Shown piece by piece: positions 11,687-41,223 of a stretch of 64,000 bases of DNA; positions within the stretch are counted from its first letter, which is position 1; every line of letters begins with the position of its first letter. The notes under the pieces were generated by a model. It had not been told where the DNA came from and did not search any database. It was given only the letters and a program-made list of their open reading frames with translations. The translations under genes were made by a program, and so were the position numbers. This DNA comes from Piromyces finnis finn. Lineage: Eukaryota > Fungi > Neocallimastigomycota. The DNA is taken from positions 1 to 64,000 of the forward strand of contig MCFH01000052.1 in the NCBI GenBank assembly GCA_002104945.1. Direction: 5' to 3'.

Positions 11687-11757
11687 TGCGTTAACCGGGA
11701 ATCGAACCCGGGCCATTTGCTTGGAAGGCAAATATTCTACCTCTATACTATTAACGC
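11687..11757 (-). tRNA. trnG-UCC: tRNA-Gly(TCC)
   Basis: Reverse complement GCGTTAATAGTATAGAGGTAGAATATTTGCCTTCCAAGCAAATGGCCCGGGTTCGATTCCCGGTTAACGCA folds to a complete 71-nt cloverleaf with anticodon TCC. Confidence 0.97.
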
Positions 11758-11770
11758 ATTATATATTAAT

Positions 11771-12269
11771 TGCAAGAAATATTTGTGGCCATAAGTTTGC
11801 CCACAAATATTTCAATTGAAACCATATATTCTGGTCACCATTTATTGGCCAAATATATGTATAACCATATATTAATGGTTATTAATTAAATAGGAAGTTT
11901 ATTTGCTTTACCCAATCAAGTGGTAAAGAAAATAAACTCATATAGTTAAATAGTATAGTCAAAACTAACGTTAAATACTTTAGCGTTAGTATTAAAGTAA
12001 ATTAGTAACTATAATAATAATTAATGTAGATAATTATAATTAATAAATAAAAGATATAATTAATATAAAATTATTTAAGTAAACATTATTTCATAAAATC
12101 TTTATACGTTTGTTTGTAATTATTTTAGTGTTATAATATTTATTTTATTTCTTTTATTATTTTTTATAAAACTTTATTTAGTTATTAACTCGTATAGAGA
12201 GGTAATAACTAACTTAATTAGCTAAATATTAATAACTTATTAACTAATATTATAAAAACACCTTTTACA
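11771..12269. repeat. Solo LTR family L, 499 bp, TSD TTAAT, 13 nt upstream of tRNA-Gly
   Basis: TGCAAG...TTTTACA flanked by TTAAT at 11766-11770 and 12270-12274. No second copy in the window, so the call rests on TG..CA termini plus TSD. Confidence 0.7.
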
Positions 12270-12904
12270 TTAATTTTGTGTAGTAATTATATTGTAATGT
12301 ATATAATAAATAGTACAATATAATTACTTATTGATAACTCAATATTAAAATTTAATATTAAATTATATGTATATAGAAAGAAAAAAAATAATAAAAAATT
12401 AAATATAGAATTAAGATTAGAACTTAGCGAGTTTATTATAAGGATTTATAATAAACAACAAAAACACAAATGGGAAGGAGGATAAGAGTGAGATGTATTA
12501 AAATTATGTTTTAATAATATGTTTTTTATTAAAATAGAATTATTTGTTATTTATTATAATTAATTTTTTTCTTATAATAATAACTCTTGAATTTCTAAAG
12601 AATTTCAAGAGTGTCTTATTTATATTTTTATTAGAAATTAAGGTTAAATAAATGGGTTCTAATCTTAACAAATTAAATGTTTAGGAAAAGACTAGAAGAA
12701 AAACCTAAACAAGTTTTCGACCAATATTCTAATCATATTAGTCATCGTGTAAATTTTAAGTAAAACCAATTATAATAATCGGGAAAACCTTAAAATACCG
12801 ATTTCCTAAAGTAAATCCGTGTTTAGATATAATATGTAAATTAATTAGTAATACACAATTAAATTACAGGATTCTTATATATAAATATTATTTAAAAATC
12901 AAAT

Positions 12905-13248
12905 GTATAAAATATTATTTAACTAAATAAATTAAATAAATAAATTAAGTGCATAAAATATTATTTAACTAAATAAATTAAATAAATAAATTAAGTGCAT
13001 AAAATATTATTTAACTAAATAAATTAAATAAATAAATTAAGTGCATAAAATATTATTTAACTAAATAAATTAAATAAGTAAATTAAGTGCATAAAATATT
13101 ATTTAACTAAATAAATTAAATAAATAAATTAAGTGTATAAAATATTATTTAACTAAATAAATTAAATAAATAAATTAAGTGCATAAATTATTATTTAACT
13201 AAATAAATTAAATAAATAAATTAAGTGTATAGAATATTATGTAACTAA
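12905..13248. repeat. 46-bp tandem repeat x7 inside LTR C (x5 in the partner LTR, ~30740-30990)
   Basis: GTG[C/T]AT marker at 12949, 12995, 13041, 13087, 13133, 13179 and 13225, versus 30782, 30828, 30874, 30920 and 30965. Confidence 0.95.
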
Positions 13249-13314
13249 ATAAATAAATAAATTATTAAACTAATAAGAAATATTAATTATTTAGATTGAA
13301 ATAATTATTATTTC

Positions 13315-14703
13315 TTACATTACCCCTTTTATATCTGGTTCCTTCAAATCGTCGTTTCTATTTATATATGGCTCTAATTGGGATATATGAAATACCGGAT
13401 GTAGGTGTAAGTTTTCTGGTAATTCCAAGCGGTAGTTCATTCTTTCCCTCTTCTCCAAAATACGAAATGGTCCAAGATATTGAGTGGAAAGTTTCTTAGA
13501 AGGTTCGTTAGAAAAATAATGTCTTCTCAACATTACTAAATCATTAATTTGTAAAGAGGGTCCAACGGATTTTTTTCTATCACCAAATTTTTTGAAATCC
13601 TCTTTAGCTTTCATAAGGTGTTGTCGAAGTGCGTCAAAATGAGAGGCCCAATTTCTTGTTAGTACAGAAGCATTATCCTTTAGGAGAATCGGAGGGGAAT
13701 CAATAGTGCAATTGGGATGGAATCCATAATTAGCGTGAAATGGTGTTTGATTAATTGATCTATTAATAGAGTTGTTATATGCCATTTCACAGAGAGGGAG
13801 ATAGTAGCACCATTCATTTTGGGATGAAGAACAATAACATCTAAGATACTGTTCGATGACAGCATTCGCTCTCTCAATTTGTCCATTGGATTGTTGATGG
13901 AAAGCGGTAGCAAGACTTGGTTTAGCATGAATAGCGGAGCATAAAGAAGTCCAAAATTGAGATGAAAATTGAGAGCCATGGTCAGAAACTATTACTTTAG
14001 GAAATCCATGATATCTGAACACTTGGGACAATAGGAGTTTAGCAGTGAGGTCAGCAGAGGGGATGTCTGCACAAGGCACTAGATGAACCATCTTTGTTAG
14101 ATGATCAGCAGCAACCATGATGCATGTACAATCTTTAGATGGAGGCAAAGAGACAATAAAATCAACGCCAATAACTTCCCAGGGTTTTGTAGGAATAGGA
14201 AGAGGTAATAATTTACCATAAGGCTTATGTCTACGAATCTTACCTCTACTGCAGACATCACACGAAAGAACATAATTTGAGATATCTTTCTTCATATTAG
14301 GCCACCAGTAGGATCTTTTGAGTTTTTCAAAAGTCCTATCTACCCCCTGATGGCCACTAGTTGGAGCATCATGGAAGGATTTAAGTAATCTTACCTTGAG
14401 TGAAGATGGAACGATGATGCGTTTTTGGAAATGTAAAACACCATCAATAAGACTAAATAATGAACTATTAATGTTTCCGGAGCTCGATTTAATTTTATTT
14501 AAAGTATTTCGACAAAATTTGTCGCCTTTTTGAGCACTGATAAGGTTGTCAATATTATCATTCATTGAGCAACAAAATACATCATTATTATTAAATATCG
14601 TTACAGGTTTCATATTAGTTTTTTTTTTTATAGTCTGGTCGTCTTGATAACGCGTCGGATTTCCCACTTTTTGAACCTGGCCTGAATGCAATTCTAAAAT
14701 CAA
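13315..14703 (-). CDS. Element 1 integrase portion of pol (frameshift-separated; no chromodomain)
   Basis: HHCC finger (HDAPTSGH..CDVC), DDE core (GVDFI, SDHGSQF, QIER) and GPY/F motif. The stop codon lies inside the LTR. Confidence 0.92.
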   Translation of the reverse strand: MILELHSGQVQKVGNPTRYQDDQTIKKKTNMKPVTIFNNNDVFCCSMNDNIDNLISAQKGDKFCRNTLNKIKSSSGNINSSLFSLIDGVLHFQKRIIVPSSLKVRLLKSFHDAPTSGHQGVDRTFEKLKRSYWWPNMKKDISNYVLSCDVCSRGKIRRHKPYGKLLPLPIPTKPWEVIGVDFIVSLPPSKDCTCIMVAADHLTKMVHLVPCADIPSADLTAKLLLSQVFRYHGFPKVIVSDHGSQFSSQFWTSLCSAIHAKPSLATAFHQQSNGQIERANAVIEQYLRCYCSSSQNEWCYYLPLCEMAYNNSINRSINQTPFHANYGFHPNCTIDSPPILLKDNASVLTRNWASHFDALRQHLMKAKEDFKKFGDRKKSVGPSLQINDLVMLRRHYFSNEPSKKLSTQYLGPFRILEKRERMNYRLELPENLHLHPVFHISQLEPYINRNDDLKEPDIKGVM

Positions 14704-17128
14704 ATTTAGAAAGAAAAAGGCTCCAGCGTATCTGCCTTTGGTTTAGATGCTGAGGCTTCTTAAGATATAACAGATTTTTGTGATCTGTAATTATCTGAAC
14801 GGGGTACTTAGCACCTTCCAGATGGTGTCTCCAGGTATCGAAAGCAGTTATAATTGCCAAAAGTTCTTTATCGTATATAGTATAATTAGTTTCGGCATTG
14901 TTAAGTGATCTGGAGTGGAAGGCAACTGGATGTAATAAATTATCAAGATCGCTGATTTGGGAGAGAACACAACCAACAGCAAAATCGCTTGCGTCGGTTT
15001 CGACAATATACTCTTTTTCCGGATCAGGAAAGATTAATATTTCTCCGACTCTAAATGCGTCCTTTAATTTATTAAAAGAGTTTTCAGCACAGTCATCCCA
15101 AATAAATTCATTACCCTTTTTTAGCAATTTACGCAAAGGTTCCATGTAAGAAGCGAAATCTTTGATGAATTTTCTGTAGAAATTACAAAGACCAAGAAAG
15201 CTTTGTAATTCCTTAATATTTTTTGGTATCGGCCAGTCTAATACTGACTTAACCTTATTCTTATCCATAGACAAACCCTTAGTAGAAACAGTAAAACCTA
15301 AGAATGTAGTTTCAGAAACATGAAAGTCACATTTCTCCAACTTAACGTATAATCCATTATCCAGGAGTAATTTAAGAACTATCCGAACGTGATTTATATG
15401 CTCTTGGAGGGAACAAGAGTAGATGATGATATCATCAAGATATACTTGCACAAAGGATCCTATGGTGTTGTTAAGGGTATCTTGGACAAAACGTTGAAAT
15501 ACAGATGGAGCATTTCTTAATCCAAAAGGCATCACCAGATATTCGAAATGCCCTAACGGTGTCCTGAAAGCAGTGAGATATTCGTGACCTTCTTTAACCC
15601 TTACCAAATTGTATGCAGATCTGAGGTCTAAGCGGGTATAAATATTAGCGCCTTTAAAAGATTCAATTAGATCATTGATTCTTGGGATCGGGTAGCTATT
15701 ACGAATGGTGATGGCATTCAGACGTCTGTAATCAACACACAATCTAAGGGTTCCATCGTGTTTCTTAACAAAGAGAACTGGGGCTCCAGCAGGCGATTTG
15801 GATTTTCTAATGAAGTTCTTTTTTAAATTATCTTTAATATACTCCTTTAACGTGTTCATTTCGGGTACAGTGAGGGAGTATATTGGTCCAAAATATAATT
15901 GACCACCAGGGATAAGGTCTATAGAAATATCATATTCCCGGTGAGGTGGTAGTTTCTCGGCTTCTTTCTTTTCAAAAACTGATTTAAGGTCAGAGTAATA
16001 CTGGCTAATTATCACATACTTAGTCTGATCATTGTTATTTGTTTCTTCACCAATAGGCATAGCTGCGCAAAAGTCTGTATCAAGAAGATCATCCTCAGAG
16101 ATCATATCAGGAATAATAGAATCAAGATTATTTTTCTTATTTGCTTCCTTATCTTCTACCATGGAAGCAGTAATATTATCATATTGTCTAAAAATTTTGT
16201 TCTTTTTTGAGGAGGGACAGTGAGACCCACAGAAACTACCGATGAAGTAAATTTTATTGGTTTTATAATTGATGAAGGGGTTGTGTAAGGATAACCAATC
16301 CCTTCCGAGAATTCCATTAATACCTTGAAGAGAGAGGTCAGCAATGCAAAACTCAAAAGTCTCTGAATGGTCCATTATCTTCAACTTCAGAGGTTTGGTA
16401 GTTTGCTTTATTGTCATACTCTTTCCGTTTGGAAGTTGAATGTTTATGGGAGAGGAGAGTCCAGAAGTTTGAATTTTGGTATTGTTAGCAAAGTTCTTAC
16501 ATATAAAACTTCTTGCAGAACCTGAATCTATTAGTAAATTTACCTTTACGTTTTTTCCATTTACAAATAGGTAAAATGATGTAGTAATGGATGTCTTCCT
16601 ATTCGGAGTATAATTTGCAGAGAGTATGTCATTTTTGAATTTATTTTTCCTTTGATGAAAGTGCTTTGAGTGTTTTTCTATTTTGTTTAGTTCTTTTCTC
16701 CTTTTAAAATAGGATTTGCTATCTCTAGAATTTCTGTTCTTTTCCCTTAGACAATTTTCTAAATAACATTTCTTATCTAATCCTATGATTATGTTAGTTG
16801 CATCAAATAATGAATTGGGTTTTTCTAACTTATCAAATTCGTCACGAACACGATTATCAAGACCTTTTCCAATTATATCAATTAGTACTTCATCAGGCCA
16901 TCCTAGACGTCCAGCCAACCTTCGAAATTCGATAGTGTATTCAACAACACTACCTAACTGGAGTTGCTTAAGTTTCCACAGCTTTTCCATTATCACATAT
17001 TTCTGCTTCCTTTCACTTCCAACATCGAAATTATCCAGTAGAAGATTCTTAAATTGATCATAGCTTATTTTCTTAATAGTTCCATCTATTAAGAGGGAGA
17101 GTCCCCATTTTCTTGCATTTCCAGACAA
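14615..17128 (-). CDS. Element 1 Gag C-terminus, aspartic protease, RT and RNase H
   Basis: LIDSGSA protease motif, YLDDII RT motif, ETDASDFAVG/DKELLAI RNase H. The frame is open upstream to ~17275 and joins the 17400 ATG by a one-base frameshift. Confidence 0.95.
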   Translation of the reverse strand: MSGNARKWGLSLLIDGTIKKISYDQFKNLLLDNFDVGSERKQKYVIMEKLWKLKQLQLGSVVEYTIEFRRLAGRLGWPDEVLIDIIGKGLDNRVRDEFDKLEKPNSLFDATNIIIGLDKKCYLENCLREKNRNSRDSKSYFKRRKELNKIEKHSKHFHQRKNKFKNDILSANYTPNRKTSITTSFYLFVNGKNVKVNLLIDSGSARSFICKNFANNTKIQTSGLSSPINIQLPNGKSMTIKQTTKPLKLKIMDHSETFEFCIADLSLQGINGILGRDWLSLHNPFINYKTNKIYFIGSFCGSHCPSSKKNKIFRQYDNITASMVEDKEANKKNNLDSIIPDMISEDDLLDTDFCAAMPIGEETNNNDQTKYVIISQYYSDLKSVFEKKEAEKLPPHREYDISIDLIPGGQLYFGPIYSLTVPEMNTLKEYIKDNLKKNFIRKSKSPAGAPVLFVKKHDGTLRLCVDYRRLNAITIRNSYPIPRINDLIESFKGANIYTRLDLRSAYNLVRVKEGHEYLTAFRTPLGHFEYLVMPFGLRNAPSVFQRFVQDTLNNTIGSFVQVYLDDIIIYSCSLQEHINHVRIVLKLLLDNGLYVKLEKCDFHVSETTFLGFTVSTKGLSMDKNKVKSVLDWPIPKNIKELQSFLGLCNFYRKFIKDFASYMEPLRKLLKKGNEFIWDDCAENSFNKLKDAFRVGEILIFPDPEKEYIVETDASDFAVGCVLSQISDLDNLLHPVAFHSRSLNNAETNYTIYDKELLAIITAFDTWRHHLEGAKYPVQIITDHKNLLYLKKPQHLNQRQIRWSLFLSKFDFRIAFRPGSKSGKSDALSRRPDYKKKN

Positions 17129-17208
17129 TTTATTGATTACAAAAGAGGTTCTTGATTCTTCATTTCTAAAGGATTCTGGATGTTCCTTAAAAAATTCTTC
17201 ACTTTGAA

Positions 17209-17400
17209 TTAAAGTTTCAAGTATATTTGCTGGATTTTTTGTTTCATTCTCTTTAGAAAGGATGCCATTAGGGGAAAAAAAGCAGGAATGAAATCAGTAA
17301 TAGCTGTGATAAGCTTGGAAGTTTGGGGATCTTGTACTCCATTATTTTTTTCATTAATATTTTGAGCAATATTTATTTCATTACGTTCGGGGTAGTCCAT
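17209..17400 (-). CDS. Element 1 Gag N-terminus (frameshifted at A7 run 17275-17281)
   Basis: Removing one base of the run fuses MDYPER..IPAF to SPNGILSKENET..LSGNARKWG of the next ORF. Confidence 0.75.
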   Translation of the reverse strand: MDYPERNEINIAQNINEKNNGVQDPQTSKLITAITDFIPAFFPLMASFLKRMKQKIQQIYLKL

Positions 17401-18432
17401 ATTATTTTTTCCAATATTATTGAAATAATATATTATATATAAAAAAAAATAGTATTAGTGATGGAAATATATATAAATATATAATTATTTTATTTTATTT
17501 TATTTTTTTTTTTTTTTTTATTATTCTAATTATTATTATTCTAATTCTAATTATTATTATTATTATTCTTTTTTTTTTTTTTTTTTTTTTTATATATATA
17601 TATATATCTTGTTTGATTGATTGGTTTTAAAAAAAAAAAAAATAAAATAAAATAAAATAATTATATATTTATATATATTTCCATCACTAATACTATTTTT
17701 TTTTTTTTTCAATGTTTGTTGGAGAAGAGTTATTATTGTAGTAATTATATTGTAATGTATATAATAAATAGTACAATTGTAAAGATATCAAACGCCTCTG
17801 TTTGATATCTTTAATGTAACTTAAGCCACAAGTATTATTGTTTAAGTTACACAAATTATATTCAGAAAAAGAAAATGAGACATAATTTATTTATTAATAA
17901 TTAAAGTTTAAAACAAAATAAATTATTAGTTTATTTTTAATGTTTAACAAGTAAATTAATATTCTCAATTTAAATCCCTAGTTTTAGTATTTTTTTTTCA
18001 TAGAAATAAATAAATAATAAATGATTAATATATCAATAATACATGGGCACATATTCAAATTGAATAGTACTTAATTTGAATTGCCAATTGTATTTTACTA
18101 AAAATAGTTATAGTTTAAATATTTATTAATAATTAAGATTTTAGTGTAGATTTTAAATAATAATATATAAGAAATAAATAGTTATAATATAATATAAATG
18201 TATTTAGGAAAAATATAAATAGAAGATATTTTTCATCATTTTATCGATGTAATTGTTATTATTAAAATTCTATTATAATAAAAGATATTTTTAATAAAAC
18301 AATTTTTTATTTTTATTTTAAATTTAGTGTTATTGTAATAGAATAGATATCCTAATCTATTCTTTCTGTGTCGCCATTACAATAACAATTACCTAACTAC
18401 TTCAAGAGTACGTTAGGATATCTACTACTGTC

Positions 18433-18554
18433 AGAAGAAGAATTTATAGAAGAACTTGGTTGCTACCATAGAAGAAGAATCTACCGAAGTACTTGGTTGC
18501 TACCACAGAAGAAGAATTTATAGAAGAACTTGGTTGCTACCATAGAAGAAGAAT
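18433..18554 (+). repeat. 37-bp tandem repeat x3.3 in the element 3 leader
   Basis: AGAAGAAGAAT...CTTGGTTGCTACC unit starts at 18433, 18470, 18507 and 18544. Confidence 0.9.
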
Positions 18555-18780
18555 TACTGAAACAATTATAGGTTAAACTCTGTTGCTGCCCTTATTAAAG
18601 GAATTCTACCGAAGGAATCAATATATAGATACAAAACTTGTTCGACACTGCTTTGCAGAACGCGTTTGAATAACTTTTGTATTTAAATAGATTGTATTAG
18701 TGTAAAAAAAAAAAAAAATTAAGATTACATACTTGAAACAGTAGTAAGAAAACATTTTTTATTTTATTTAATAGTTTACG

Positions 18781-19312
18781 TTGGAGGCCTTAATTAGTGA
18801 GTTTGAAAGTTTAAATTTAGAGATGGGTGATAGGACTGTGGGTGTTTCTGGGAATTCGGGGAACATTATTAATGCTCCACCGATATTTTCTGGTAAACAA
18901 AGAGAATTGGATGGATTTTTAACCAGAGTTGAGTTGGTATTTCGTACTCGACCGACACTGTATAATACAGATCGAGTCAAGGTCGACTTCGTTATATCAT
19001 ACTTCTCTGGTAAACCTTTGGAATGGACTTCAGTGTTGATGAAGAATAATAGTGGGGTTTTAAATCATTATGATGAATTTGTAGATAGGTTGAAGGCTAA
19101 TTTTGGCAGTTATAGATACGATACCGTTGTAGCTAACGGTAAATTAGATAATCTTCGCCAAAGGAAACTTGGTCAGGTATTAGATTACATTACCGAGTTT
19201 CAACGTATTAGCCAAAATTCAAGCTTTAATGATAGCGCAAAAATCTACATGTTTCTGAAAGGTTTATTACCACCACTTAGGGAGAAGTTGGCTTTCATTG
19301 AATCAAACCCAA
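18781..19312 (+). CDS. Element 3 Gag N-terminal part (interrupted by element 2)
   Basis: Retrotransposon-gag motifs (PPIFSG..LDGFLTRVELVF, YFSGKPLEW). Joins in frame to 25447 after removing element 2 and one TSD (..ESNP-T-SIEQLISS..). First ATG is at 18823; 18781 is TTG. Confidence 0.92.
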
Positions 19313-19819
19313 TGTAAAGAACTAATGTTCAATAAATAAAAACACAAATATATAAAAAGGAAAATAATAAAAGCAAATAAAAATTTTATTATTGAACACT
19401 TAACAAAATTATAACAGGTTAGTGTTTAATAATTTTATTTTTATTATAAAATTTCTTTGTTAATAAAAACTCGAATTCAAAATAATTTTTTGAGAAATTT
19501 CACTCGTATTTATATAAATGTTTTTAAAAGTAAATTTATAAAAATTTTACAACTTAATTTTTTAAGCCAATCAGAAATTATCTTCTTTGGTAAAATTTCG
19601 TTATAAAATATTTTAATAATTAAAAAAAAGATATTAATGAGGTTTCGAACTCGAGTAGTTCAAACCAAGGTCTTAGTTACTAACCACTAAGACAGGTTAC
19701 TAATTTCTATGATTCGTTACATGGTCCTCCTCCAGGATTCGGATACCAGACGAATCAACTAAATTTATTTGTTACTTTATTATAAAAGAAATAATTGAAA
19801 CGAGTGAATACATTTTGAA

Positions 19820-19861
<42 letters not shown>

Positions 19862-22800
19862 TGAATATTAAATTATAAATATATTTTTTCATTTTCTATT
19901 TTCTATTTTCTATTCTCTTTTTCTCTTATCAATTACTAATTTTTTTTTTAAATTAATAACTATTACTAATGTGAATTATTAAAGTTTTTAATTAGTTCAT
20001 CGCAGTTTAAATTACTTTCAGGTTCCCAAGATGCTTCTGAAAGCGGATAACCTTTCCATTTTATTAGATATTGAATCTTCCCATAATGCTTTCTTTTATC
20101 AAGTATTTCTTCTACTTCGTATTCTTCTTCTTCATTTACTATTATAGGTGGAGGTGGATCTTTGATTCTTCCAAAACTATCTTCATAATACGGTTCTAGG
20201 TTTGAAACATGAACAATTGGGTAAATCTTCAGCGATTTTGGTAATTCTAATTTATAAGTGAGATTAGAGATTTTACTAATTATCCTAAACGGGCCAAGTT
20301 TCCTAGGATTAAATTTTTTATTTCCTTTATGAATTATCAAGGAGCTATCCAACCATACTTTGTCACCAGTCTTGAATGTCGGAGGTTCTTGTCTATACTT
20401 GTCGGCATATTTCTTTTGAACTTGGATGGCCTTCTTTAAGTTTTCTTTTAGTTTCTCCATTAGGTCTTCAAAGTCTCTTGTAAACTCTTCAGCTCTTGGA
20501 ACATTCGTTTGGTCAGGAATTACCGGAGAGTATTTTGGGTGATAACCATAATTTAGGAAGAATGGTGAGAATTTTGTTGAGTCTTGAACAGCATTATTGT
20601 AACTGAATTCTGCCAATGGAAGAAAGTTGATCCAGTTTGTTCCTTTATAATTAGAAAAGCATCTTAAATATTGTTCAACAACGGAGTTTACCCTCTCCGT
20701 TTGGCCATTGGATTGATGATGATATGGTGAAGAATATTTAACATTGACGTCCAAAGATTGACAAATAGATTTCCAAAATTTCGAAGTGAATTGCGCGCCT
20801 CTATCGGAAATAATTTCAGAGGGGAGACCGTGAATTTTGAAAATATAATTCAAAAAAGCAAAAGCAGTATCAGAAGCAGAAGGAATACCTTTAAAGGGAA
20901 TGAGGTGGCACATTTTAGTAAGGCGGTCAACTACAACAAGAATAGTGTTAAATCCATCCGAAGGAGGGAGGTCAGTAATGAAATCCATAGAAATAGAAGC
21001 CCAAGGATGGTCACTAATCTCAAGGGGTTGAAGTAAACCATATGGTTTATGACGAGAAGGCTTGGAGCGGCAACAAATCTCGCAAGATCGGATATAATTC
21101 TTAACATCAATAGAAATGGATGGCCACCAAAAGTCACGAGAGATCAAAGAAATAGTTTTGCGGATACCAAAATGACCGGCAGAGGGGGAATCATGACAGA
21201 GTTTCAAAACGGAGGGACGGCATTTTAAAGGGACATAGATTCTACTATCAAAAAGAAGAAAACTATTACTAAGGGAGAATTTATTACTTTGTGGATGTGG
21301 AGCTGGGAGATTCTTATTTTCAAGAAAATTGCAAATGTCAATGTAAAAAGAGTCGTTCACATATTCAGATAATATTTCATCATTAAGAGAAGAAATGGAA
21401 CAAATCAAAGCGCAGAAATTCTCAGGGCGTAAAACCGAAAAAGGAGCATCAGAAGGAAGAGAGGAATCCATATAATCAGGTCTTCGTGAAAGCGCATCAG
21501 GTTTACCATTAGATGAACCAGAGCGGTAGAGAATTTTAAAGTTAAATTCGGAAAGGAAAAGGGCCCAACGAACAAGACGTTGTGACATTTTTTCCGGTTT
21601 CTTTTGATATAGTAAGTTTCGATGATCTGAATAAATAGTAAACGGGGTTAAAGCACCTTTGAGAAAATGTCGCCAAGTTTCAAGAGCATTAACAATAGCT
21701 AAAAGTTCTTTATCGTATATAGGATAGTTTCTTTCAGCGGAAGTAAGAGATCTTGAATAGAAAGCGACAGGATGGATCATTTTATCATCAGGAGATTTTT
21801 GAGACAGAACTGCTCCTATAGCAAAGTTGCTAGAGTCGGTTTCAACAATAAAGGGAAGATCACGATTTGGGTGAGACAGGATGGGAGCAGATGAAATTAA
21901 TGATTTAATGGTATTAAATGCATCAAGAGCTTCAGAGGAAAAATCAAATTTAACGTTTTTACGAAGTAGTCTGTGAAGGGGTTGTGCAACTTTGGCAAAA
22001 TTAGGAATAAACCGACGATAGTAGTTGGCTAGGCCAATAAAAGATTGAACTTCCTTGACACTGGACGGAACTGGCCAATTAATAATAGCAGAAACTTTAT
22101 TGGGGTCCATATGTATACCTTCAGAGGATATCCGATGACCAAGGAAATCAATAGAGGAAACAAAGAATTCACACTTTTCAAGCTTAGCATAAAGACCAGC
22201 ATTTCTTAAGCGATCCAGGACTTCGATAACGTGCTTAATGTGGGATTTATGGTTTTCAGAAAAAATAATTAAATCGTCAATATATGAATAAACAAAAATC
22301 CCTAGAATATTTTCCAGAACATCATTGATAAAATGCTGAAAAACAGCCGGGGCGTTTTTCAGTCCGAATGGCATTACCAGGTATTCAAAGTGGCCGAATT
22401 TGCAGGTGAAAGCTGTTTTATATTCATCACCCTTTTTGATTCGGACCAAATTATATGCTGATCGTAAATCCAATTTTGAGAAGATTTTCGCTTTACCAAG
22501 ATGCTCTAGCATATCTTGAATCAGAGGTAGAGGATAGGAATCTCTAATGGTAATTTTGTTGAGTTCCCTATAATCTTGACAAAGACGGAGTTCACCATTC
22601 TTTTTAGGAACGAAAAGTACAGGCGCACCAGCAGGAGATTTGGATTTCCTAATGAAACCCTTTTTGAGGTTTTCATCGATATAATCCTTCAAAACTCTTG
22701 TTTCTTCGTCTGTTAGTGGGTAGATTGGTCCATAAAATAGCTTGGCATTTTCGATTAGGTTTATTTGGCAATCATAAGGACGATGAGGTGGTAATTGAGC

Positions 22801-25441: not shown

Positions 25442-25446
25442 CCCAA

Positions 25447-28400: not shown

Positions 28401-29507
28401 ACTACACTTATGGTTGTTGTCGATAGATTTACTAAATTTGCTCACGCCATTCCTTTACGTTGTCTTCCTACTGCTTCGATTGCTGCTGATGCTTTTATTG
28501 CCAATGTCTTCCGTTTGCATGGTCTTCCTAATTCCATCATTTCTGATAGAGGCTCGCAATTTACTTCTGATTTCTGGTCAAGACTTTGTGACCTTCTTAA
28601 TATCAATCATTCATTGTCAACTGCTAACCATCCGCAGACAGATGGTCAAACGGAGAGGGTGAACGGCATATTAGAACAATATTTCCGTTGTTTTATCAAT
28701 AAGAAGCAGAATAACTGGGTTGATCTTATTCCATTTGCTGAATTTGCATATAATAACACTTTACAGCAATCTATAAATCAATCCCCATTCTTTGCTAATT
28801 ATGGTTTTCATCCAAAGTTCAGCTTGGAAATCCCGGCTAATGATAGACCTAGTAGAGCTGAACAAAGAGTAATTAATATGAATAAAAACTTTAAATTATT
28901 AAAAGAAAGCTTAGAAAAAGCAAAAGAAACATATAAGAAATATGCCGATATGAAAAGAATGAGTCCCCCGGAATTTGAAGTGGGAAAGAAGGTATGGTTA
29001 TTGAAAGATTCTCCGGGAACTAACTTGAAGAAGAAATTAGCACCTCAAATGCTTGGTCCATTTGAGATAATTGGAAAAGTTAGTTCTCTTGCTTTCAAAT
29101 TGAAACTTCCAAAGACAATGAGATGTCATCCAGTCTTTCATGTTTCATTGTTAGAACCATACTTTGAAAACAAGTTTAACGACAGGTCTAATCGTAGGAA
29201 GAGGAACATTCACCTTAACACAGATTTAATTGAAAAAATTCCAGAGAAAATTGAAAAGATGAAATCTGTTAATGGTGAAACATTTTATAAGTTATCATGG
29301 AAAGGATTTGACAAATCCACTTGGATTTCTGAAGATCAGATTCCAGATAAACAATTAATACAAGAGTTTGAAAGAAACTCTAAAAAGTCAAAATATAAGT
29401 CGAACGACTCCTCCATGAAAATTAGAAAGAATAAAGTTGGTAATCTAATCAAGCACAGATACCAACCATTTGTAATTGAAATTCCTTCGAGAAAAGATTC
29501 CTTATAA
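25447..29507 (+). CDS. Element 3 Gag-Pol remainder (knuckle, PR, RT, RH, IN, divergent chromodomain-like tail)
   Basis: CFLCKQPGHLKFNC, LIDSGSE, YIDDIL, ETDASNYAVG, HDSVAAGH..CVTC, and tail FYKLSWKGFDKSTWISEDQI. Confidence 0.95.
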
Positions 29508-31062
29508 ATTAATCTCGCAGGAGCTCGACTTAGAGAGAGAGATTGTAAAGATATCAAACGCCTCTGTTTGATATCTTTAATGTAACTTAAGCCACAAGTA
29601 TTATTGTTTAAGTTACACAAATTATATTCAGAAAAAGAAAATGAGACATAATTTATTTATTAATAATTAAAGTTTAAAACAAAATAAATTATTAGTTTAT
29701 TTTTAATGTTTAACAAGTAAATTAATATTCTCAATTTAAATCCCTAGTTTTAGTATTTTTTTTTCATAGAAATAAATAAATAATAAATGATTAATATATC
29801 AATAATACATGGGCACATATTCAAATTGAATAGTACTTAATTTGAATTGCCAATTGTATTTTACTAAAAATAGTTATAGTTTAAATATTTATTAATAATT
29901 AAGATTTTAGTGTAGATTTTAAATAATAATATATAAGAAATAAATAGTTATAATATAATATAAATGTATTTAGGAAAAATATAAATAGAAGATATTTTTC
30001 ATCATTTTATCGATGTAATTGTTATTATTAAAATTCTATTATAATAAAAGATATTTTTAATAAAACAATTTTTTATTTTTATTTTAAATTTAGTGTTATT
30101 GTAATAGAATAGATATCCTAATCTATTCTTTCTGTGTCGCCATTACAACAATATAATTACTTATTGATAACTCAATATTAAAATTTAATATTAAATTATA
30201 TGTATATAGAAAGAAAAAAAATAATAAAAAATTAAATATAGAATTAAGATTAGAACTTAGCGAGTTTATTATAAGGATTTATAATAAACAACAAAAACAC
30301 AAATGGGAAGGAGGATAAGAGTGAGATGTATTAAAATTATGTTTTAATAATATGTTTTTTATTAAAATAGAATTATTTGTTATTTATTATAATTAATTTT
30401 TTTCTTATAATAATAACTCTTGAATTTCTAAAGAATTTCAAGAGTGTCTTATTTATATTTTTATTAGAAATTAAGGTTAAATAAATGGGTTCTAATCTTA
30501 ACAAATTAAATGTTTAGGAAAAGACTAGAAGAAAAACCTAAACAAGTTTTCGACCAATATTCTAATCATATTAGTCATCGTGTAAATTTTAAGTAAAACC
30601 AATTATAATAATCGGGAAAACCTTAAAATACCGATTTCCTAAAGTAAATCCGTGTTTAGATATAATATGTAAATTAATTAGTAATACACAATTAAATTAC
30701 AGGATTCTTATATATAAATATTATTTAAAAATCAAATGTATAAAATATTATTTAACTAAATAAATTAAATAAATAAATTAAGTGCATAAAATATTATTTA
30801 ACTAAATAAATTAAATAAATAAATTAAGTGCATAAAATATTATTTAACTAAATAAATTAAATAAATAAATTAAGTGTATAAAATATTATTTAACTAAATA
30901 AATTAAATAAATAAATTAAGTGCATAATTATTATTTAACTAAATAAATTAAATAAATAAATTAAGTGTATAGAATATTATGTAACTAAATAAATAAATAA
31001 ATTATTAAACTAATAAGAAATATTAATTATTTAGATTGAAATAATTATTATTTCTTACATTT

Positions 31063-31683
31063 TGATAACGGATTGGTAGTTATATTATAACTTTTTAACT
31101 ACTTCTTCTGTTATCTTATATTGTTTTATCTCGACAGCTATTGTACGAGCTTTAACAATATCTACTAGTTTTATTAATTTATTTTAAGTTATTTTATAAT
31201 TTTAATAGTTTTATTATTTTAATAATATTTATATAGAATAATAACACCAGATTTATTCTATAAAATATTATTTATTATTAACACAATAATTACAAATTAG
31301 ACAAGTTTAATTTCGTTTTTATATTTTCTTTTATTTATTGTTCTTACGCTCTTTTTAACAATAATTTTTATTATATAAAAACTTATTTTTTGTCTTTTAA
31401 ATATTATTATGTATTCACTAATTAATTATATTAACTATTATTAAAATTTAACTTATTATTAGTAATCTAAGTCTCTCATTTTCTACTAAAAATTATTATT
31501 ATTCTTTATATTAAAAATTATTTTTATAATTTAACCCAATCAAATATATAAATTTATAAAATATTTGATTTTATGTAAATTATATTTTTATAATAAACTA
31601 TATAAAATTATTTAATAATTATTTTATAATAAAATTTTCTACTAATATCAAATTTATAATATATTTATAATTATTATTTATCA
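31063..31683. repeat. Solo LTR family F, copy 1 (TGATAAC...TTATCA)
   Basis: 621 bp, colinear with 38638-39257. TG..CA termini, followed by ATTT. Confidence 0.8.
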
Positions 31684-31687
31684 ATTT

Positions 31688-33013
31688 TGATATAAAATGA
31701 ACCTAAAAACCTTAATTAATAATATAATTGAATATTACTATAAATGTTATATAAGCATAAAATAATGTAATATTGGAATAGATTATAATATAGTTTTTAG
31801 TACATTTTATTTAGTACATTAATGTATTTATCATATTTTTATAATCATGTGATAAATTAAAGTATTTATAGTAATTATAGTATTTAATATAAACAGATAA
31901 ACAAACAAACTTTATAGTTAGATTTTGATATAAATTAGTAGAAAATATAGTAAATTAGTCTCTATCTAAGAATATAATAGTTAGGAGAAGATATTCTTAA
32001 GATCATATAATATTAAGTATGTATTTGAATAATTTATAAATAAAGTATATAAGTCAACCCACAAATCCTGAGTGTATTGAACCGAATTGTATCAATTGGT
32101 GGAGATATCGGTCTCAGGGAGGGATGAGAACTTATATCAAATTTTTTTTTAGTTTATTATAAGTTTTGTTATTTTTTTAGTAAAATATTGGATTATGATT
32201 ATAATGAAGATATAAGAAGAAGTTGTAGAAGATATCGAAGTATAATATAATGACAATATATTTATCAACCTATATATATATATACAATATATATATTATT
32301 TAAGTAGCTAAATTGGAAAATTTAAGCTAAAATTGCATTCCTATAACCAAGAACTCAAGAGAAATCTTAAAGAGAAAAATCCATAATGAAATAACCATTC
32401 TAGGAGTTTCTATAGTTAATATGCTAATGGAGCTACCAGAAAACCAATTATAGACTTTATTTCTGGATTTAATACAGAATACAAGCAAATTGCTATAATT
32501 AAGACAAAAATGCTAAGAAGAGGTTTAAATTTGAAGATAAAAATATAATAAATTCATACCTTTGTCATGATCAACTTGGACAAGTTGAATTTTAAGGAGG
32601 GAGATATGATATAAAATGAACCTAAAAACCTTAATTAATAATATAATTGAATATTACTATAAATGTTATATAAACATAAAATAATGTAATATTGGAATAG
32701 ATTATAATATAGTTTTTAGTACATTTTATTTAGTACATTAATGTATTTATCATATTTTTATAATCATGTGATAAATTAAAGTATTTATAGTAATTATAGT
32801 ATTTAATATAAACAGATAAACAAACAAACTTTATAGTTAGATTTTGATATAAATTAGTAGAAAATATAGTAAATTAGTCTCTATCTAAGAATATAATAGT
32901 TAGGAGAAGATATTCTTAAGATCATATAATATTAAGTATGTATTTGAATAATTTATAAATAAAGTATATAAGTCAATCCACAAATCTTGAGTGTATTGAA
33001 CCGAGTTGTATCA
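31688..33013 (+). mobile_element. Miniature non-autonomous LTR element (TRIM-like, family G): 407-bp LTRs, 512-bp non-coding interior, tRNA-Ala-type PBS, PPT
   Basis: LTRs at 31688-32094 and 32607-33013 (TGAT..ATCA, at least 4 transitions apart). PBS TGGTGGAGAT from 32097. PPT AAGGAGGGAGATA at 32594-32606. ATTT on both sides. Confidence 0.88.
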
Positions 33014-33071
33014 ATTTTGATACAATAGAAAAATATTATCTTAATTCTATAAATGAATATAGAAAAAGTGA

Positions 33072-34046
33072 TGTGAAGATATTAAGTGGATTTAAAACAA
33101 ATTCAGATAATATCTATAATTAATTAAACATAATAATTAGAATTAAATGATCCCAATAATTATTTTGAAACACCTTTAAAAGTCACCTTTTAAATTTTGA
33201 TTCAGTGAAAGGGTTATGATTTCAAAAATTTAATATCAATACACTATAACCCTTAACCAAAAATAAACAAACACGAAACAAGGCGTAACTCGCCAAAAAC
33301 GATCGCTACGGCTGTAAGTGCTACGGCTATGAAACCAGGTTTATTAGAAAGCTTAAGGAAAAAGCTATATTTTGGTACAATCGCGGTCCTTCTAACTGGT
33401 CATTTAAGGAAGATATGGTCATTTGAAGATTTTAATAGGTAAATTAAAATTAATATGATATCAAGTATGGATCATAGACATTTCTTATGACTTGACGAAA
33501 AATTAAAAAGATATCAATATAGAAATTTTAATTATATTAATTTAATTAATGATAGTGACTGTTACTAAAAATAGAACTAAACCATTTAGGTGTAACAGTT
33601 AACATTTATAAATTAAATAATTCTAATTATTATAAATTAGGTTAACGGATCAAGTGTTTAAATGATTAATCATATGTTTATTTCATTTTATGTCATGACA
33701 AAACAAACAAACAAACAAACAAACAAGCAATCTTATTATGTTATTAATATATTACATGTAATACTTTATTTTTATCAATTTAATAATCTGAACAAAGAAT
33801 ATAAATTAGAATGAATTGAATTCGATTTTAATTCTTTGTAAAGATTATAGTTATAATCTTAATTATATAGTTATTAAATATATTATCATTTATATTATTA
33901 TTACTAAATAAATAAAATTTTATAAAAAAAAGTTATTCTAAAGAATAAATATTAATTTTTCATTTGGAAGTTTAAAGTGTTATTTTATATTTAAATTTAA
34001 TTTCTTAAAAAACATATTTACTATATAATTGATAACATTCTGACCT
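33072..34046. repeat. Solo LTR family I (inverted relative to 4169-5141, end truncated)
   Basis: Reverse complement match including GCTACGGCTGTAAGTGCTACGGCT and AACATTCTGACCTG. Confidence 0.88.
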
Positions 34047-34543
34047 GATATCACTTAACAAGTGATAATATTTGTATCTAAAAAAAAAAATAAAAAAAAA
34101 TAAAATAAATGAAAATAGAATAAATGATTTTTATACTTGTTCATTTGCAAGTATTAGTTAATGTTTAAAAATATAAAGTTTATTTAATTATAAAATTATA
34201 TCATTATTTAATAACTCTAGTATTATTAAATAAAAAAATGTATGTTTTATATTCTAATTTTCAGGGATTATTAGTAACCCTTTTAAAAATAAGTTTTATT
34301 ATAAAATCATTTTTGAATTTAATATTTAAAAATATATATCTAATTTTTCGCTCTGGATTATTAGGAACATCTTTTAAAATAAAGTAATTCTATCACTATT
34401 TATACAAAATTATTATTTTAAAGTATAATTATAAACAAATATAAACTATTTAATTTAAAAATAAGTAAACAATTAAATAAACAAAAAGTTTACAATTTAA
34501 TAATTTTATACATGTTAATTATTTTAGTTTTTAACTATCTGTG

Positions 34544-34847
<304 letters not shown>

Positions 34848-36027
34848 AATTCATAATTTATAAATTTAATTATTTATCAATTTTTGATACGCTACTCATA
34901 TAAAAACATAATAAAAACTAGCTGAATAAACACGACTTAACCTATAGTAACTTATAATAAAAATAAACGATAGTAACCCTTAAAAATGAATGAATAATAA
35001 TTTTATGAAAATATAACCCTTTTTTAAATAAATAATATTCTCTTTATTATATAATAAATTCTGAGTAAAAACGACCTAATAGTGATAATAATAAAATAAA
35101 TTATTAAATAAAATAAAACGACTTAATCCAATAATGTACTAAAATAATAAAATAATAATAAATAAATAAAAATGAATAAATAAACTAAAAATAAAATGGT
35201 ATACATCAAATTATTAATTCTAGTGTTTATCCAAGTGTTCTTTAGAAATTCTCTTAAACTTATAAATTAATAAATAACTAATTGAGTAATTATTACTAAA
35301 ATGATAAACTTAAAACCTGGAAATAGAACAATAATAACAATTCCAAAGATAAAATACAGAACTCTTTTATGTTTCTGTATAAAATGAATGTTTATAATAA
35401 TTGATACTTTTAATATTTTAATTTTGTTAAATTTTTATTTTAATTTTATTTTAATTTTATTTTAATATTATTTTAATTTTAAAATTTAATTATTTTATTC
35501 AAGGTATTATACATTTAATGATAGTCAATGATAATTTATAATAATTTTTCTAAATTTAAACATTTTGAAGTAATAAGAAAATCAAATAAGTAATATTCTA
35601 TAATATTTTATAATACTAAGACATAATTTTAATTTATTCTTTTAATTTTAATAAATAATAACAATAGTAATAATAATATTTAATAGTTAAAAATAATAAT
35701 ACATATAATAAATGAAAATGTATAAAAGGAAGATAAAATTCTTCTTTATAAAGGGGCGGACAATAAATAGATAATAAATAAATTATAAAATATAATAAAG
35801 ATTTAATTTAAAACATAATAAGAGTTTATTTTCGAGTTTTGAGTGATTTATTTGTTAATTATAAAACATATTTTTATTTTATTTTAAATTTATTGTTTCA
35901 TCATAATAATATAGAATTTATTATTTATTAAAAACATTATATTATTCAAAAATATATCGGTCAACGCATCATTTTTGTTAAGGAACCAACAAATAATGTT
36001 ATTCTTGTCATAATTAATGATTATGAC

Positions 36028-37057
36028 TGTCACGAATACTAGTGGAATCTGCAATTTCAAGATCACTTGAAATTGTGAAATTACTTATAAAATTTCAAAA
36101 TCAATAATTTATTTTCAAATAAATTATAAAATTATATTAAGAAATATTTAAAAAATTTAGAAAAGGTTAAGATATGACCTTAACCCTTAATAATTTTATA
36201 ACAAATAACTTTAACCCTTATCGTTAAAATTAAATAAGGAAAAACACCCGTATCTCCTTAACGAATGGCGATTTTTGGGAAATTATGATTGGTTGGGAGA
36301 TTATGGGTTCGTTAGAAAGCCACGCTTGAGATAAACAACATATCTTAAAATCAGGTCAATATCTCTGCTGGTTCACGAGATATTCCAATTTAAAGATATT
36401 TTGTTAGTAATGATTAATTGTTTATTCAGAGAATGATCACCCCTGATGTATTGAACATAAATCATTCACCCAAAAGTATAAAAATTATTGTTTAATTAAA
36501 TTAAAATTATTTTCAGGAATTAATTAACTTTATTTTATAATAATTATTTTCAATAACATATCTTATAATCTTTGAATTAAAAGATTATAATTATTAATAT
36601 TATATACAATGAATTATATTATAATTAAGAAATAATTAATATTATGAATATATAAACAATAGTTATTTTTAATAATTAGTAATAAATCTTAAGTTTAGCC
36701 TTAGTATTATAAAATATATTATAAAAATAATCATGTATTAAAAAGTTATTTTATTATTAAATGTAAAATTACAATTAGTATAAATAGTTTAGAATAGTTT
36801 TATGAATTAAATCTTTGTAAAGATTATTATCTTATTAATACTTAATAAGTATTACTATTGAATAATCTTTTTATTATATATATGATTTAAATAAAATAAA
36901 AGAAATTATTTTAACCACAATACATAATTTAATTATTCATTTATAAAACAATTAAGATTATTTTAATAAAACATTTTTTTCCTAACCTAGTTATCTTTAA
37001 TCTTTTATTTAATTTAATATTTTAATATTAAATTATAAGTTTAACAAAACTTTTACA
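36028..37057 (+). repeat. Solo LTR family A, complete, 1030 bp, TSD ATGAC
   Basis: TGTCACG...CTTTTACA flanked by ATGAC at 36023-36027 and 37058-37062. Confidence 0.93.
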
Positions 37058-37704
37058 ATGACCTAATCCATTATTGTTCCTAAATGTATGAAAACTTTAC
37101 AATATTCTTATTTGTAAATTAATGTATCACTTAAATTATATTTAAAATTATTAATAATTATTTTTATTGAACTTAAATTTTATTTTATTAAACTTAAAAA
37201 TTAATTTAGTAATAATAATATATTGAAAATTATAGTTTATTGAACTATTAGTTTAATTTATCAAGTTAATGAATTTTTATTAATTAAAATTATGAATAAT
37301 ATTTCTGTAAAATAGTAAAATTCTTTAGTTAAATATATTTAAAGTAAACTTTTAATGTATGTTAATCAATTTAATAATATGTATAAATATTTATTATAAT
37401 AGTAATGTAATCTTATTATTCCTTTAAAAGTAATTTAAATACTAAAATTAATGTAAATAATTAAAGACTAATTCTTTTAATTAACACTACTTAAATTTCC
37501 ACAAAGAGTATAAAAAGGTGTATATTATAAGAATTAGAGAATATACAGATATTTTTATTTTTATTTTTATTTTATTTTATAATTTTATATTAATATCTTA
37601 ATAAAACAATTTTTCTTATTTCATTTTAATATTATTTTTGAGTATTAATAAATTTATTAATATTTTATAAATAAAATTAAATTCCTCGAACCATAACAAT
37701 TTTG

Positions 37705-38634
37705 TGTAAGAAATAATAATTATTTCAATCTAAATAATTAATATTTCTTATTTCTTATTAATTTAATAATTTAGTTAATAATATTTTATACACTTAAATT
37801 ATTTATTTAATTTATTTTGTTAAATATAAATTATACATTCATATACTTTATTTAATTTATTTAGTTAAATATAAATTATACATTCATATACTTTATTTAA
37901 TTTATTTAGTTAAATATATTTCATATATTTATATAATTTATTTAATTTATTTAATTAAATAATAATTTGTTCATTTGATTTTTAAATAATATTTATATAC
38001 AAGAATCCGTAATTTTACCCTTTAATTATATATTACTAATTAATTTACCTGTTATATCTAAACACGGATTTACTTTAGGAAATCGGTATTTTAAGAATTT
38101 TCCGATTATTATTACAAATAATTGGTTTTACTTAAAATTTACACGATGACCAATATGATTAGAATATTGGTTGAAAACTTGTTTAGGTTTTTCTTCTAGT
38201 CTTTTCCTAAACATTTTATTTGTTAAGATTAGAACTCATTTATTTAACTTTATATTTTTTAATAAAAATATAAATAAAACACTCTTGAAATTCTTTAGAA
38301 TTCAAGAGTTATTATTATAAGAAAAAATAATTATAATAAATAACAAATATTTCTATTTAATAAAAATTAACTAAAAAAAAAACATATTATTAATAAACAT
38401 AATTCTTATATTATACATTTCATTCTCATCCCTCTTCCCATTTGCGTTTTTTGTTGTTTATTATAAATCCTTATAATAAACTCGTTAAGTTCTAGTTTTT
38501 TTTTAATTTCATATTTAATTTTTTATTATTTTCTTTCCATATACATATAATTTAATATTAAATTTTAATATTGAGTTATCGATAAGTAATTGTATTATAC
38601 TATTTATTATAAATATTATAATAAAATTACTACA
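37705..38634 (+). repeat. Solo LTR family C (opposite orientation to element 1), TSD TTTTG
   Basis: TGTAAGAAATAATAATTATTTC...ATTACTACA is a diverged reverse complement of 12279-13319. TTTTG at 37700-37704 and 38635-38639. Confidence 0.92.
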
Positions 38635-38637
38635 TTT

Positions 38638-39257
38638 TGATAACGGATTAGTAGTTATATTATAACTTTTTAACTACTTCTTCTGTTATCTTATATTGTT
38701 TTATCTCGACAGTTATTGTACGAGCTTTAACAATATCTATTATTTTATGAATTTATTTTAGTTTATTTTATAATATTTATAGTTTTATTATTTAATAATA
38801 TTTATATAGAATAATAACACCAGATTTATTCTATAAAATAATATTTATTTTCAACACAATAATTAAAAATTAGACAAGTTTAATTTCGTTTTTATATTTT
38901 CTTTTATTTATTGTTTTTACACTCTTTTTAACAATAATTTTTATTATATAAAAACTTATTTTTGTCTTTTAATTATTATTATGTATTCTTTAATTAACTA
39001 TATTAATTGTTATTAAAATTAACTTATATCTTAATATTCTAAGTCTTCTTATTTTGTACTAAAAATTATTATTATTTTTTATATTAAAAATGATTTTTAT
39101 AATTTAACCCAATCAAATATATAAATTTAAAAAATAATTGATTTTATGTAAATTATATTTTTGTACTAAACTATATAAAATTATTTAATAATTATTTTTA
39201 TAATAAAATCTTCTACTAATATCAAATTTATAATATATTTATAATTATTATTTATCA
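38638..39257. repeat. Solo LTR family F, copy 2
   Basis: 620 bp, a few percent diverged from 31063-31683 by eye. Followed by ATTT then TGATAAGG. Confidence 0.8.
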
Positions 39258-39439
39258 ATTTTGATAAGGAATAATGATATAATGTTTTTATTATTAAAAT
39301 AACTTAACCATTTATCATTATTATCATATTTAAGTTAGATAAATAATATTAATTTATTAATTAAAAATTTAGTTAAGTGTAAATATTTTAATTAAATTTT
39401 ATTTTTATTAAATTGAACTAATATTATATTCTAAATTAT

Positions 39440-41206: not shown

Positions 41207-41223
41207 TGGTCCTTCGAACCGGA
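41207..41223 (+). promoter_or_regulatory. Primer-binding site complementary to the tRNA-Tyr 3' end, after an LTR end (..TATCA at 41205)
   Basis: TGGTCCTTCGAACCGGA. Eukaryotic tRNA-Tyr typically ends ..TCCGGCTCGAAGGA-CCA, giving one mismatch to that reference. Confidence 0.7.

Follow-up and report, generated by a model that had tools for sequence, protein, structure and literature searches.

The insertion of transposons beside tRNA genes, which has been described in ascomycete yeasts and in Dictyostelium, is a textbook example of safe-site choice. Among the elements that behave in this way, the retrotransposon Ty3 integrates in both orientations, and DGLT-A of Dictyostelium discoideum uses a broader window of 13-33 bp. 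The Ty3/gypsy elements Ty3, Ty3p, Tj1 of Schizosaccharomyces japonicus, Tca8 and Tyl3/Ylt1 all insert within a window of a few base pairs just upstream of the RNA polymerase III (Pol III) start of tRNA genes, which lies some 10 bp before the 5' end of the mature tRNA (PMC5911963, Table 1). In Saccharomyces cerevisiae, Ty3 is tethered to TFIIIB, and the vestigial chromodomain of its integrase (IN) contacts Brf1 (bioRxiv 10.1101/2021.07.27.453949). In the AT-rich genome of D. discoideum, the independently arisen elements DGLT-A and TRE5-A each occupy positions at a defined distance upstream of tRNA genes, and no register-preserving stacks are described for them in the papers concerned (PMC5006619, PMC6101501). 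Here we describe an array of long terminal repeat (LTR) elements that extends upstream from a tRNA-Gly(UCC) gene in a 64,000-nucleotide stretch of the genome of the anaerobic gut fungus Piromyces finnis (Neocallimastigomycota; contig MCFH01000052.1, positions 1-64000, or C181:1-64000 in our numbering; hereafter, the window). The array is a case of the known, Ty3-style mode of Pol III-directed integration, and we consider it likely, with a probability of roughly 0.74, that it is a polar stack of LTR retrotransposons that owes its growth to integration at a specific position upstream of a Pol III gene. No publication on elements of this kind in Neocallimastigomycota turned up in a literature search.

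Anatomy of the array

The window belongs to an assembly of 232 contigs and 56.46 Mb. It is very AT-rich, with a G+C content of 15-36% along its length, and contains three tRNA genes, of which the tRNA-Gly(UCC) gene is the landmark of the array; this gene is encoded on the minus strand, so its upstream side faces higher coordinates. The ends of the LTRs were fixed without any use of the repeated 4-mer discussed below, namely, by comparison of the window with itself, by genomic copies and by annotation of a library against the loci. In particular, the ends of the B family were set by about 40 other genomic copies, the segment 33018-37698 was used as a genome query, and the ends of element G were set by the anatomy of its primer-binding site (PBS) and polypurine tract instead of other copies.

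Going outward from the tRNA-Gly gene, the array consists of at least seven LTR units in the order B1, G, H, K, N, B2 and E (Table 1), and the seven junctions of these units read ATTT in five cases, ATTTT in one and TTTT in one. An earlier, sequence-only reading of this DNA had listed five copies of ATTT between LTR termini and had placed this 4-mer at positions -12 to -15 of the tRNA-Gly gene. All five copies are present, each at an independently defined LTR terminus, and the position relative to the tRNA holds once two later insertions, C and A, are excised via their target site duplications (TSDs): in the reconstructed sequence, the 5' end of the tRNA, as defined by Rfam, is followed by 11 bases, then by ATTT and then by B1. 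The repeated use of a single 4-bp site at a fixed position relative to the tRNA, as proposed in that reading, is borne out by this reconstruction. By contrast, two units that had been taken for single elements turned out to be composite. In the first of these (12277-31683), the A element is lodged inside the first bases of the solo LTR B1, and in the second, the solo LTR A' occupies the identical spot of another B LTR, B2. Removal of A restores ATTT followed by TGATAACGG, that is, a solo B LTR with ATTT on both flanks, and B2 is flanked by ATTT in the same manner. The caveat that the segment 33018-37698 might hold more than one element was well placed, as it comprises three units of the array, H, K and N, with two further junctions.

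ATTT accounts for 2.5% of the 4-mers in the window, which gives a chance of about 6e-6 for its recurrence at four or more of the six further junctions. Across the window as a whole, the raw 8-mers ATCAATTT and ATTTTGAT show no enrichment, so the signal resides in their position at the LTR ends. The array runs past position 39263 as element E, the internal sequence of which reaches at least 43130 and is shared with a copy on another contig (C124) up to 42125 and again from 42907.

Table 1. Features of the tRNA-Gly array in coordinates of the window (PR, protease; RT, reverse transcriptase; RH, RNase H)
Feature	Positions	Strand	Description	Evidence
tRNA-Gly(UCC)	11687..11757	-	array landmark	Rfam RF00005, 67 bits; ARAGORN
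C	11771..12269	+	solo LTR (TGC/TGT..ACA), 5-bp TSD TTAAT (11766-70, 12270-74)	other copies; TSD
ATTT copy 1	12273..12276	+	left TSD of B1	reconstruction from C and A TSDs
A	12279..31059	-	autonomous Ty3/gypsy (gag-PR-RT-RH-IN), 5-bp TSD TTTTG (12274-78, 31060-64); LTR pair 12279-13319 and 17737-17777 + 30153-31059	LTR pair from window self-comparison
Y	17778..30147		nested in A, TSD ACAAT	
X	19313..25441		nested in Y, chromodomain integrase	
B1	31063..31683	-	solo LTR, non-autonomous B family, 4-bp TSD ATTT; first class-I unit	99-100% identical to at least 40 copies
ATTT copy 2	31684..31687	+		
G	31688..33013	+	1.3-kb non-autonomous LTR element, 407-bp LTRs	TGG-type PBS ~32097; polypurine tract before 32607
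ATTT copy 3	33014..33017	+		
H	33018..34879	+	solo LTR, 33018-33071 + 34061-34879, split by P	genomic copies
P	33072..34060		solo LTR in H at H positions 50-54, 5-bp TSD AGTGA	
Junction ATTTT	34880..34884	+	ATTT plus one T	
K	34885..35971	+	solo LTR (TGATACGC..GCATCA, 1087 bp)	genomic copies
Junction TTTT	35972..35975	+	one base from ATTT	
N	35976..37698	+	solo LTR, autonomous N family, 35976-36027 + 37058-37698, TGTTA..TAACA ends	genomic copies
Q	36028..37057		solo LTR in N at N positions 48-52, TSD ATGAC	
ATTT copy 4	37699..37702	+	left TSD of B2	
A'	37705..38634	-	solo A-type LTR, inverted relative to A, TSD TTTTG (37700-04, 38635-39)	
B2	38638..39257	-	old solo B LTR	identity to 33 other copies does not exceed 94%
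ATTT copy 5	39258..39261	+		
E	39262..43130	+	most distal unit, 5' LTR 39262-41205, PBS from 41207	
Q'	39439..40455		solo LTR within the E 5' LTR	
Solo LTR in E	42126..42907		5-bp-TSD solo LTR cutting the E internal region, TSD AAAAT	

The target site is a position rather than a sequence

The possibility that ATTT is a part of the LTR or a preferred target sequence was ruled out. About 22 independent insertions of B elements are flanked by at least 13 different 4-bp duplications (ACGT, TTCT, GAAA, AAAA, TTTA, ACAA, TAAA, ATAG, TTGT and others), so that flanking by ATTT regardless of tRNA context, the outcome that the sequence-only reading had named as fatal to its own proposal, is not observed. 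The K family behaves similarly, with the flanks GTTT/GTTT, TTTT/TTTT and ACGT/ATGT at other loci. As expected of elements that target the Pol III start site, TSDs are spaced 10-14 nt from the 5' end in eight tRNA genes, which represent five kinds; for B elements, these genes include two tRNA-Trp genes (TTTA and ACAA), two tRNA-Thr genes (GAAA and TAAA), tRNA-Glu (TTCT), tRNA-Ser-UGA (ACGT) and tRNA-Ser-GCU (AAAA); both orientations of B relative to the tRNA occur. Furthermore, 29 genes in the genome share the 5' sequence of the tRNA-Gly gene in question, and in 18 of the 28 others a TGATA/TGTTA start is found 13-16 nt upstream, with 11 distinct flanks, compared with none for a reversed-pattern control and with a chance level of about 5%, as roughly estimated from base composition. 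The target is a position relative to tRNA genes, at approximately -11 to -18 depending on the gene, which is hit with a precision of about one base in each gene. Of the nucleotide-precise targeting claimed previously, the register stands, whereas the precision is about plus or minus 1 nt, given the ATTTT and TTTT junctions in this array and the pair of ATTC and TTCT at tRNA-Glu.

A genome-wide search with the pattern of a B end, 4 nt and TGWTA returned 76 matches versus 4 in the control, with many different 4-mers; ATTT accounts for 3 of the 76, two of which belong to this array. That so many B ends are separated from the end of another LTR by exactly 4 nt is also what would be seen if integrases were drawn to LTR termini or to LTR-LTR junctions, perhaps by the terminal inverted repeat or by bent DNA, with the tRNA gene seeding the first insertion only and later units entering any junction of the stack. 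Such homing to LTR ends, which we regard as an unlikely explanation of the array, is further favoured by two independent insertions of B on the first bases of a C LTR, both with the TSD TTGT. However, there is at least one tRNA-adjacent B (on C90) whose outer flank contains no other recognized LTR end, and the inner LTR boundaries of six two-LTR B elements are untouched.

Age gradient and polarity

Two measures of age were used, namely, the differences between the paired LTRs of an element and private substitutions, defined as bases that are seen in no other copy of the family compared. The paired LTRs differ at 0 of 947 positions in A and at 4 of 407 positions in G, in agreement with the earlier observation that the LTRs of G are about 1% apart and those of the more proximal element match. 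Private substitutions are at 0.2% (1/496) in C and 0% in B1, the proximal units; at 0.7% in P, 0.4% in K, 0.9% in N and 1.1% in Q, in the middle of the array; and at 2.0% in A', 4.0% (25/620) in B2, 3.2% in E and 2.1% in Q', at its distal end. The rise of age with the order of the units from the tRNA is described by a Spearman rho of 0.91 (permutation p of 3e-4) and by a rho of 0.89 for the six class-I units alone, in line with the prediction of the sequence-only reading that the newest insertions lie next to the tRNA and the oldest ones distally. The age gradient supports growth of the array at its tRNA-proximal end; homing to LTR ends, by contrast, predicts no gradient. Homing also predicts insertion into either end of a host LTR, whereas the secondary insertions A, A', P and Q are all found at the tRNA-facing ends of their hosts.

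The great age of B2 is apparent from its identity of no more than 94% to each of 33 other B copies, including those of the young B' subfamily. Identity to B1 was dropped as an age measure for the B' copies, which form a young subfamily of their own and are 99.7% alike. The nested series of A, Y and X shows no LTR-pair substitutions in any of its three members, which implies very recent activity.

The element families

The families involved display the hallmarks of LTR elements, including TG..CA ends, a PBS that begins with TGG at a distance of 1-2 nt from the LTR in G, B and E, and purine tracts before the 3' LTRs. For B and G, the PBS agrees over its initial 9 nt with the 3' end of tRNA-Trp with the added CCA, and no longer match was found among the tRNAs compared. 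B is a 4.5-kb element that encodes gag and a protease-like open reading frame (ORF) but neither RT nor IN, and accordingly is non-autonomous. The B LTRs are highly uniform, with 99% identity among at least 40 of them; within each of six full copies, the two LTRs are separated by no more than one substitution, with a single gap in one of the pairs. The N element (L042) encodes a gag with a CCHC knuckle and a separate 1328-aa pol with the RVT_1, RT_RNaseH, Integrase_H2C2 and rve domains, that is, the PR-RT-RNase H-IN layout of the Ty3/gypsy group that is also seen in A, X and Y, and N is an autonomous Ty3/gypsy element. An autonomous member of the clade, which the sequence-only reading had left to be found, is at hand, although its ends are TGTTA..TAACA, so that the TGAT..ATCA ends ascribed to the members of the clade do not extend to N.

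The pol of N is 27-39% identical to those of A, X and Y, compared with 40-47% among the latter three; this identifies the 4-bp-TSD group as a separate lineage, in line with the distinction that had been drawn between it and the 5-bp-TSD elements with TGT..ACA ends. The second ORF of B weakly resembles N pol in its N-terminal part (23%) but shows no similarity to A, X or Y. The TSDs made by B, G, K, N and E are 4 bp long, as opposed to the 5-bp TSD of Ty3. Nor is N the closest kin of Ty3: a comparison with Ty3 Gag-Pol (7q5b) yields 347 bits for the pol of N and 524 bits for that of Y, which is nested in the same array. Y has no tRNA-relative position. In the integrase of X (19966-24330 for the coding part of this element), Pfam detects a Chromo domain with 61 bits. 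Contigs of 750-950 nt from three runs that are possibly RNA, the library type being only guessed, cover the internal part and parts of the LTRs of G (31710-33004), so G may be transcribed.

The array shares with Ty3 the placement of Ty3/gypsy elements just upstream of tRNA genes, in both orientations in the case of B. Beyond the TSD length and the distant kinship, it differs from Ty3 in that the SH3-like domain of the N integrase is not followed by a tail, whereas Ty3 carries the vestigial chromodomain at this point; in that many families, mostly non-autonomous, occupy one site in stacks that are 7-10 units deep and keep the register; and in that the host lies outside Ascomycota.

Probable further registers of integration

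The array also received later insertions with 5-bp TSDs, namely, C (TTAAT), A (TTTTG), which carries the nested Y and X, and A' (TTTTG), along with P, Q and Q', which are inserted inside H, N and E, respectively. These 5-bp-TSD families, too, are positioned relative to tRNA genes. C is the latest and most tRNA-proximal insertion of the array and lies at -10 to -14, which would be its register; elsewhere, C copies are found 14 nt from a tRNA-Arg gene. A straddles the boundary between ATTT and the initial TG of B1, and A' lies at the same boundary of B2. If A-type elements use the register of -13 to -17, A' would have entered when B2 was the proximal unit and A when B1 was. In all, three A-type hits on the NNN/TG boundary of a TGATAA-type LTR were observed, in both orientations and with the TSDs TTTTG, TTTTG and AAATG (C214:164.9 kb, L010). 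Homing to LTR ends could claim these three hits for itself; we find them best explained by the -13 to -17 register over recognition of the B sequence.

P, Q and one further family, all with 5-bp TSDs, make up a third class of insertions, which are located 47-55 nt inside the tRNA-facing end of the LTR that was proximal at the time (33072-34060, 36028-37057 and 39439-40455 in the window; L039:2285; L033:4016-5111; L034:2501-3602). In this array, the distance of P and Q from the tRNA-facing ends of their host LTRs, H and N, is about 50 nt; a P LTR on C155 is found 47-50 nt from the end of a B' element that faces a tRNA-Thr gene; and in one case, a Q LTR is located 67 nt upstream of a tRNA-Arg gene with no LTR in between (L039:2285). 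These positions suggest a further target register at about -63 to -69, which would fall some 50 nt inside whichever LTR was proximal. Homing to LTR ends needs a second rule for P and Q, to the effect that they insert 50 nt from an end, whereas the Q LTR located 67 nt from the bare tRNA-Arg gene accounts for these positions directly. The position of TRE5-A at about -48 is a parallel to the P- and Q-type register, with the difference that TRE5-A is a non-LTR element.

Stacks elsewhere in the genome

Annotation of other loci showed that stacks punctuated by the same 4-mer recur next to tRNA genes. On C155, a tRNA-Thr gene is followed by 10 nt, TAAA, R, TAAA, a full B, TAAA, B' (with a P LTR), TAAA and a B fragment, the count of TAAA at this gene being five. 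On C154, a tRNA-Ser gene is followed by 13 nt, ACGT, a full B, ACGT, K, ATG(T), E, ATGT and an H-like LTR, and the older copies of this junction look like products of CpG-to-TpG decay. Shorter stacks are found on C205 (tRNA-Ser, AAAA, B, AAAA, K, AAAA), on C214 (tRNA-Trp, TTTA, a full B, an A-type solo LTR with the TSD AAATG, then E) and on C200, where the register between B (TTCT) and E (ATTC) at a tRNA-Glu gene is off by one base.

Several observations weigh against position-specific integration as the sole origin of the array and of its counterparts. Within the array, the flank of K reads TTTT instead of ATTT; its distal end and last ATTT were not found, nor was a 3' LTR of E; none of the short contigs from sequencing reads spans any of the junctions, so that the order of the units rests on the assembly; and the age proxy depends on the number of copies compared per family, which ranges from 4 to 34. 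The integrase of N, as far as its sequence tells, ends 20-30 residues past the SH3-like motif and gives no Pfam chromo or SH3_Tf2-1 match. At other loci, the stacks on C219 (TTGT three times), C167 (GTTT twice), C208 (AAAA) and C187:284k have no tRNA gene within the 3.6-10 kb examined, and no 5S, U6, 7SL or other Pol III gene was detected beside such stacks at the Rfam gathering score. On C219, a young full B adjoins a C LTR, which is not an obvious tRNA side, and on C8, a younger B is distal to an older B' with mismatched flanks. The stacks that have no tRNA in reach and the order on C8 are as homing to LTR ends would have it. However, the tRNA-less stacks were inspected over 3.6-10 kb only, and full elements of 4.5-6.5 kb can hide a tRNA gene; on C219, two insertions, that of P in K and that of a further LTR into C at position 53, imply that a tRNA lies on the opposite side.

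A different account, which we consider very improbable, is that the array arose largely by recombination or segmental duplication of pre-built LTR blocks rather than by serial insertion in place. A block resembling the end of H, K, the start of N and Q does recur elsewhere, which also counts against serial insertion: it is found with 88-95% identity on C187, C165 and C13, and tandem units of 5.57 kb are present on C74 and C79. These tandems (C74:2.7-21.6 kb and C79:830-849 kb, period of about 5.57 kb) contain the end of H, K, the start of N, Q and a pair of B-type LTRs, with AGGT/GGGT as punctuation; their repeated junctions reappear on C47:4.8-23.4 kb, and the repeats on the three contigs look like a satellite born from a tRNA-type stack. 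The mismatched flanks of some B copies, such as GTTT/ACAA on C167 and ATAG/T on C8 (L031/L032/L037, C24), likewise point to rearrangement, probably in the form of ectopic recombination between LTRs that are 99% identical. Nevertheless, foreign blocks would bring their own 4-mers, whereas all seven junctions of the array read ATTT or a one-base variant of it; the exact K-N junction seen in the window has no second copy in the genome, and of the three other junctions between a K end and TGNTAAGG, two have other 4-mers and one, on C46, has TTTT but is followed by an E-type start. Moreover, the copies of the block are only about 90% similar to the window, compared with 98% for independent K copies against the K of the window, which fits independent stacking of the same families. 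Given the tRNA-less, mismatched and tandem stacks, LTR-end homing or rearrangement may have contributed. At two loci, a 40-nt segment starting with ACAATTTTGGTG adjoins B, in both orientations, which probably reflects ectopic recombination between LTRs as well.

A model of array growth

The observed anatomy, register, tRNA association and age gradient can be brought together in a model in which a 4-bp-TSD Ty3/gypsy lineage, comprising the autonomous N family, two non-autonomous families, B and G, and three solo-LTR families, H, K and E, would insert at a constant spacing from the 5' end of the tRNA, which varies from gene to gene between about -11 and -18. The factor responsible could be, by analogy with Ty3 and TFIIIB, a tether to the Pol III initiation complex. 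Each insertion would duplicate ATTT, and only the copy on the tRNA side would keep the right distance, so that the next element would enter there and the older ones would be pushed outward; the polar order would follow from the geometry of the target site. The units of the array would have arrived in the order E, B2, N, K, H, G, B1.

The formal likeness to CRISPR and integron arrays that was pointed out in the sequence-only reading extends to the polar addition of units at one end, beside a fixed landmark, to the short repeats between units and to the order as a record of time. It does not extend further: the "repeat" in this case is but a target duplication, the units are selfish elements, and there is no sign in the window of host acquisition machinery or of any use of the record.

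Outside the array, the window contains two 93-nt tRNA genes (6417-6509 and 49916-50008) within a 250-bp duplicated segment, with LTR material near each; both have the anticodon TGC according to ARAGORN run with introns, and score 55 bits in Rfam. An ORF of 1154 aa is located on the minus strand at 57857-61321, in a G+C-richer stretch.

Implications

The registers described here admit of a wider reading, which we offer tentatively and to which we would give somewhat less than an even chance. In this early-diverging fungus, several unrelated LTR lineages might each gauge their position from the Pol III complex at three discrete registers, namely, about -10 to -17 in the two proximal classes and about -63 to -69 in the third; every tRNA gene might then be a register-preserving, chronologically ordered ledger of the transposon history of the genome; and the 4-bp-TSD lineage, having Ty3-like precision without the chromodomain ruler, might embody a new solution to the problem of tethering.

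In Piromyces finnis, tRNA-directed integration takes place in a very AT-rich genome, involves many families, both autonomous and parasitic, and is exact enough for the same 4-base register to be kept over successive insertions. The resulting stacks give relative dates for the bursts of each family without a molecular clock and constitute a natural test of the exactness of targeting. They also suggest that an integrase can target Pol III genes in the absence of the domain on which Ty3 relies for this purpose. Finally, tRNA targeting accounts for much of the repeat architecture around the tRNA genes of this genome, including the composite satellites that are derived from stacks.

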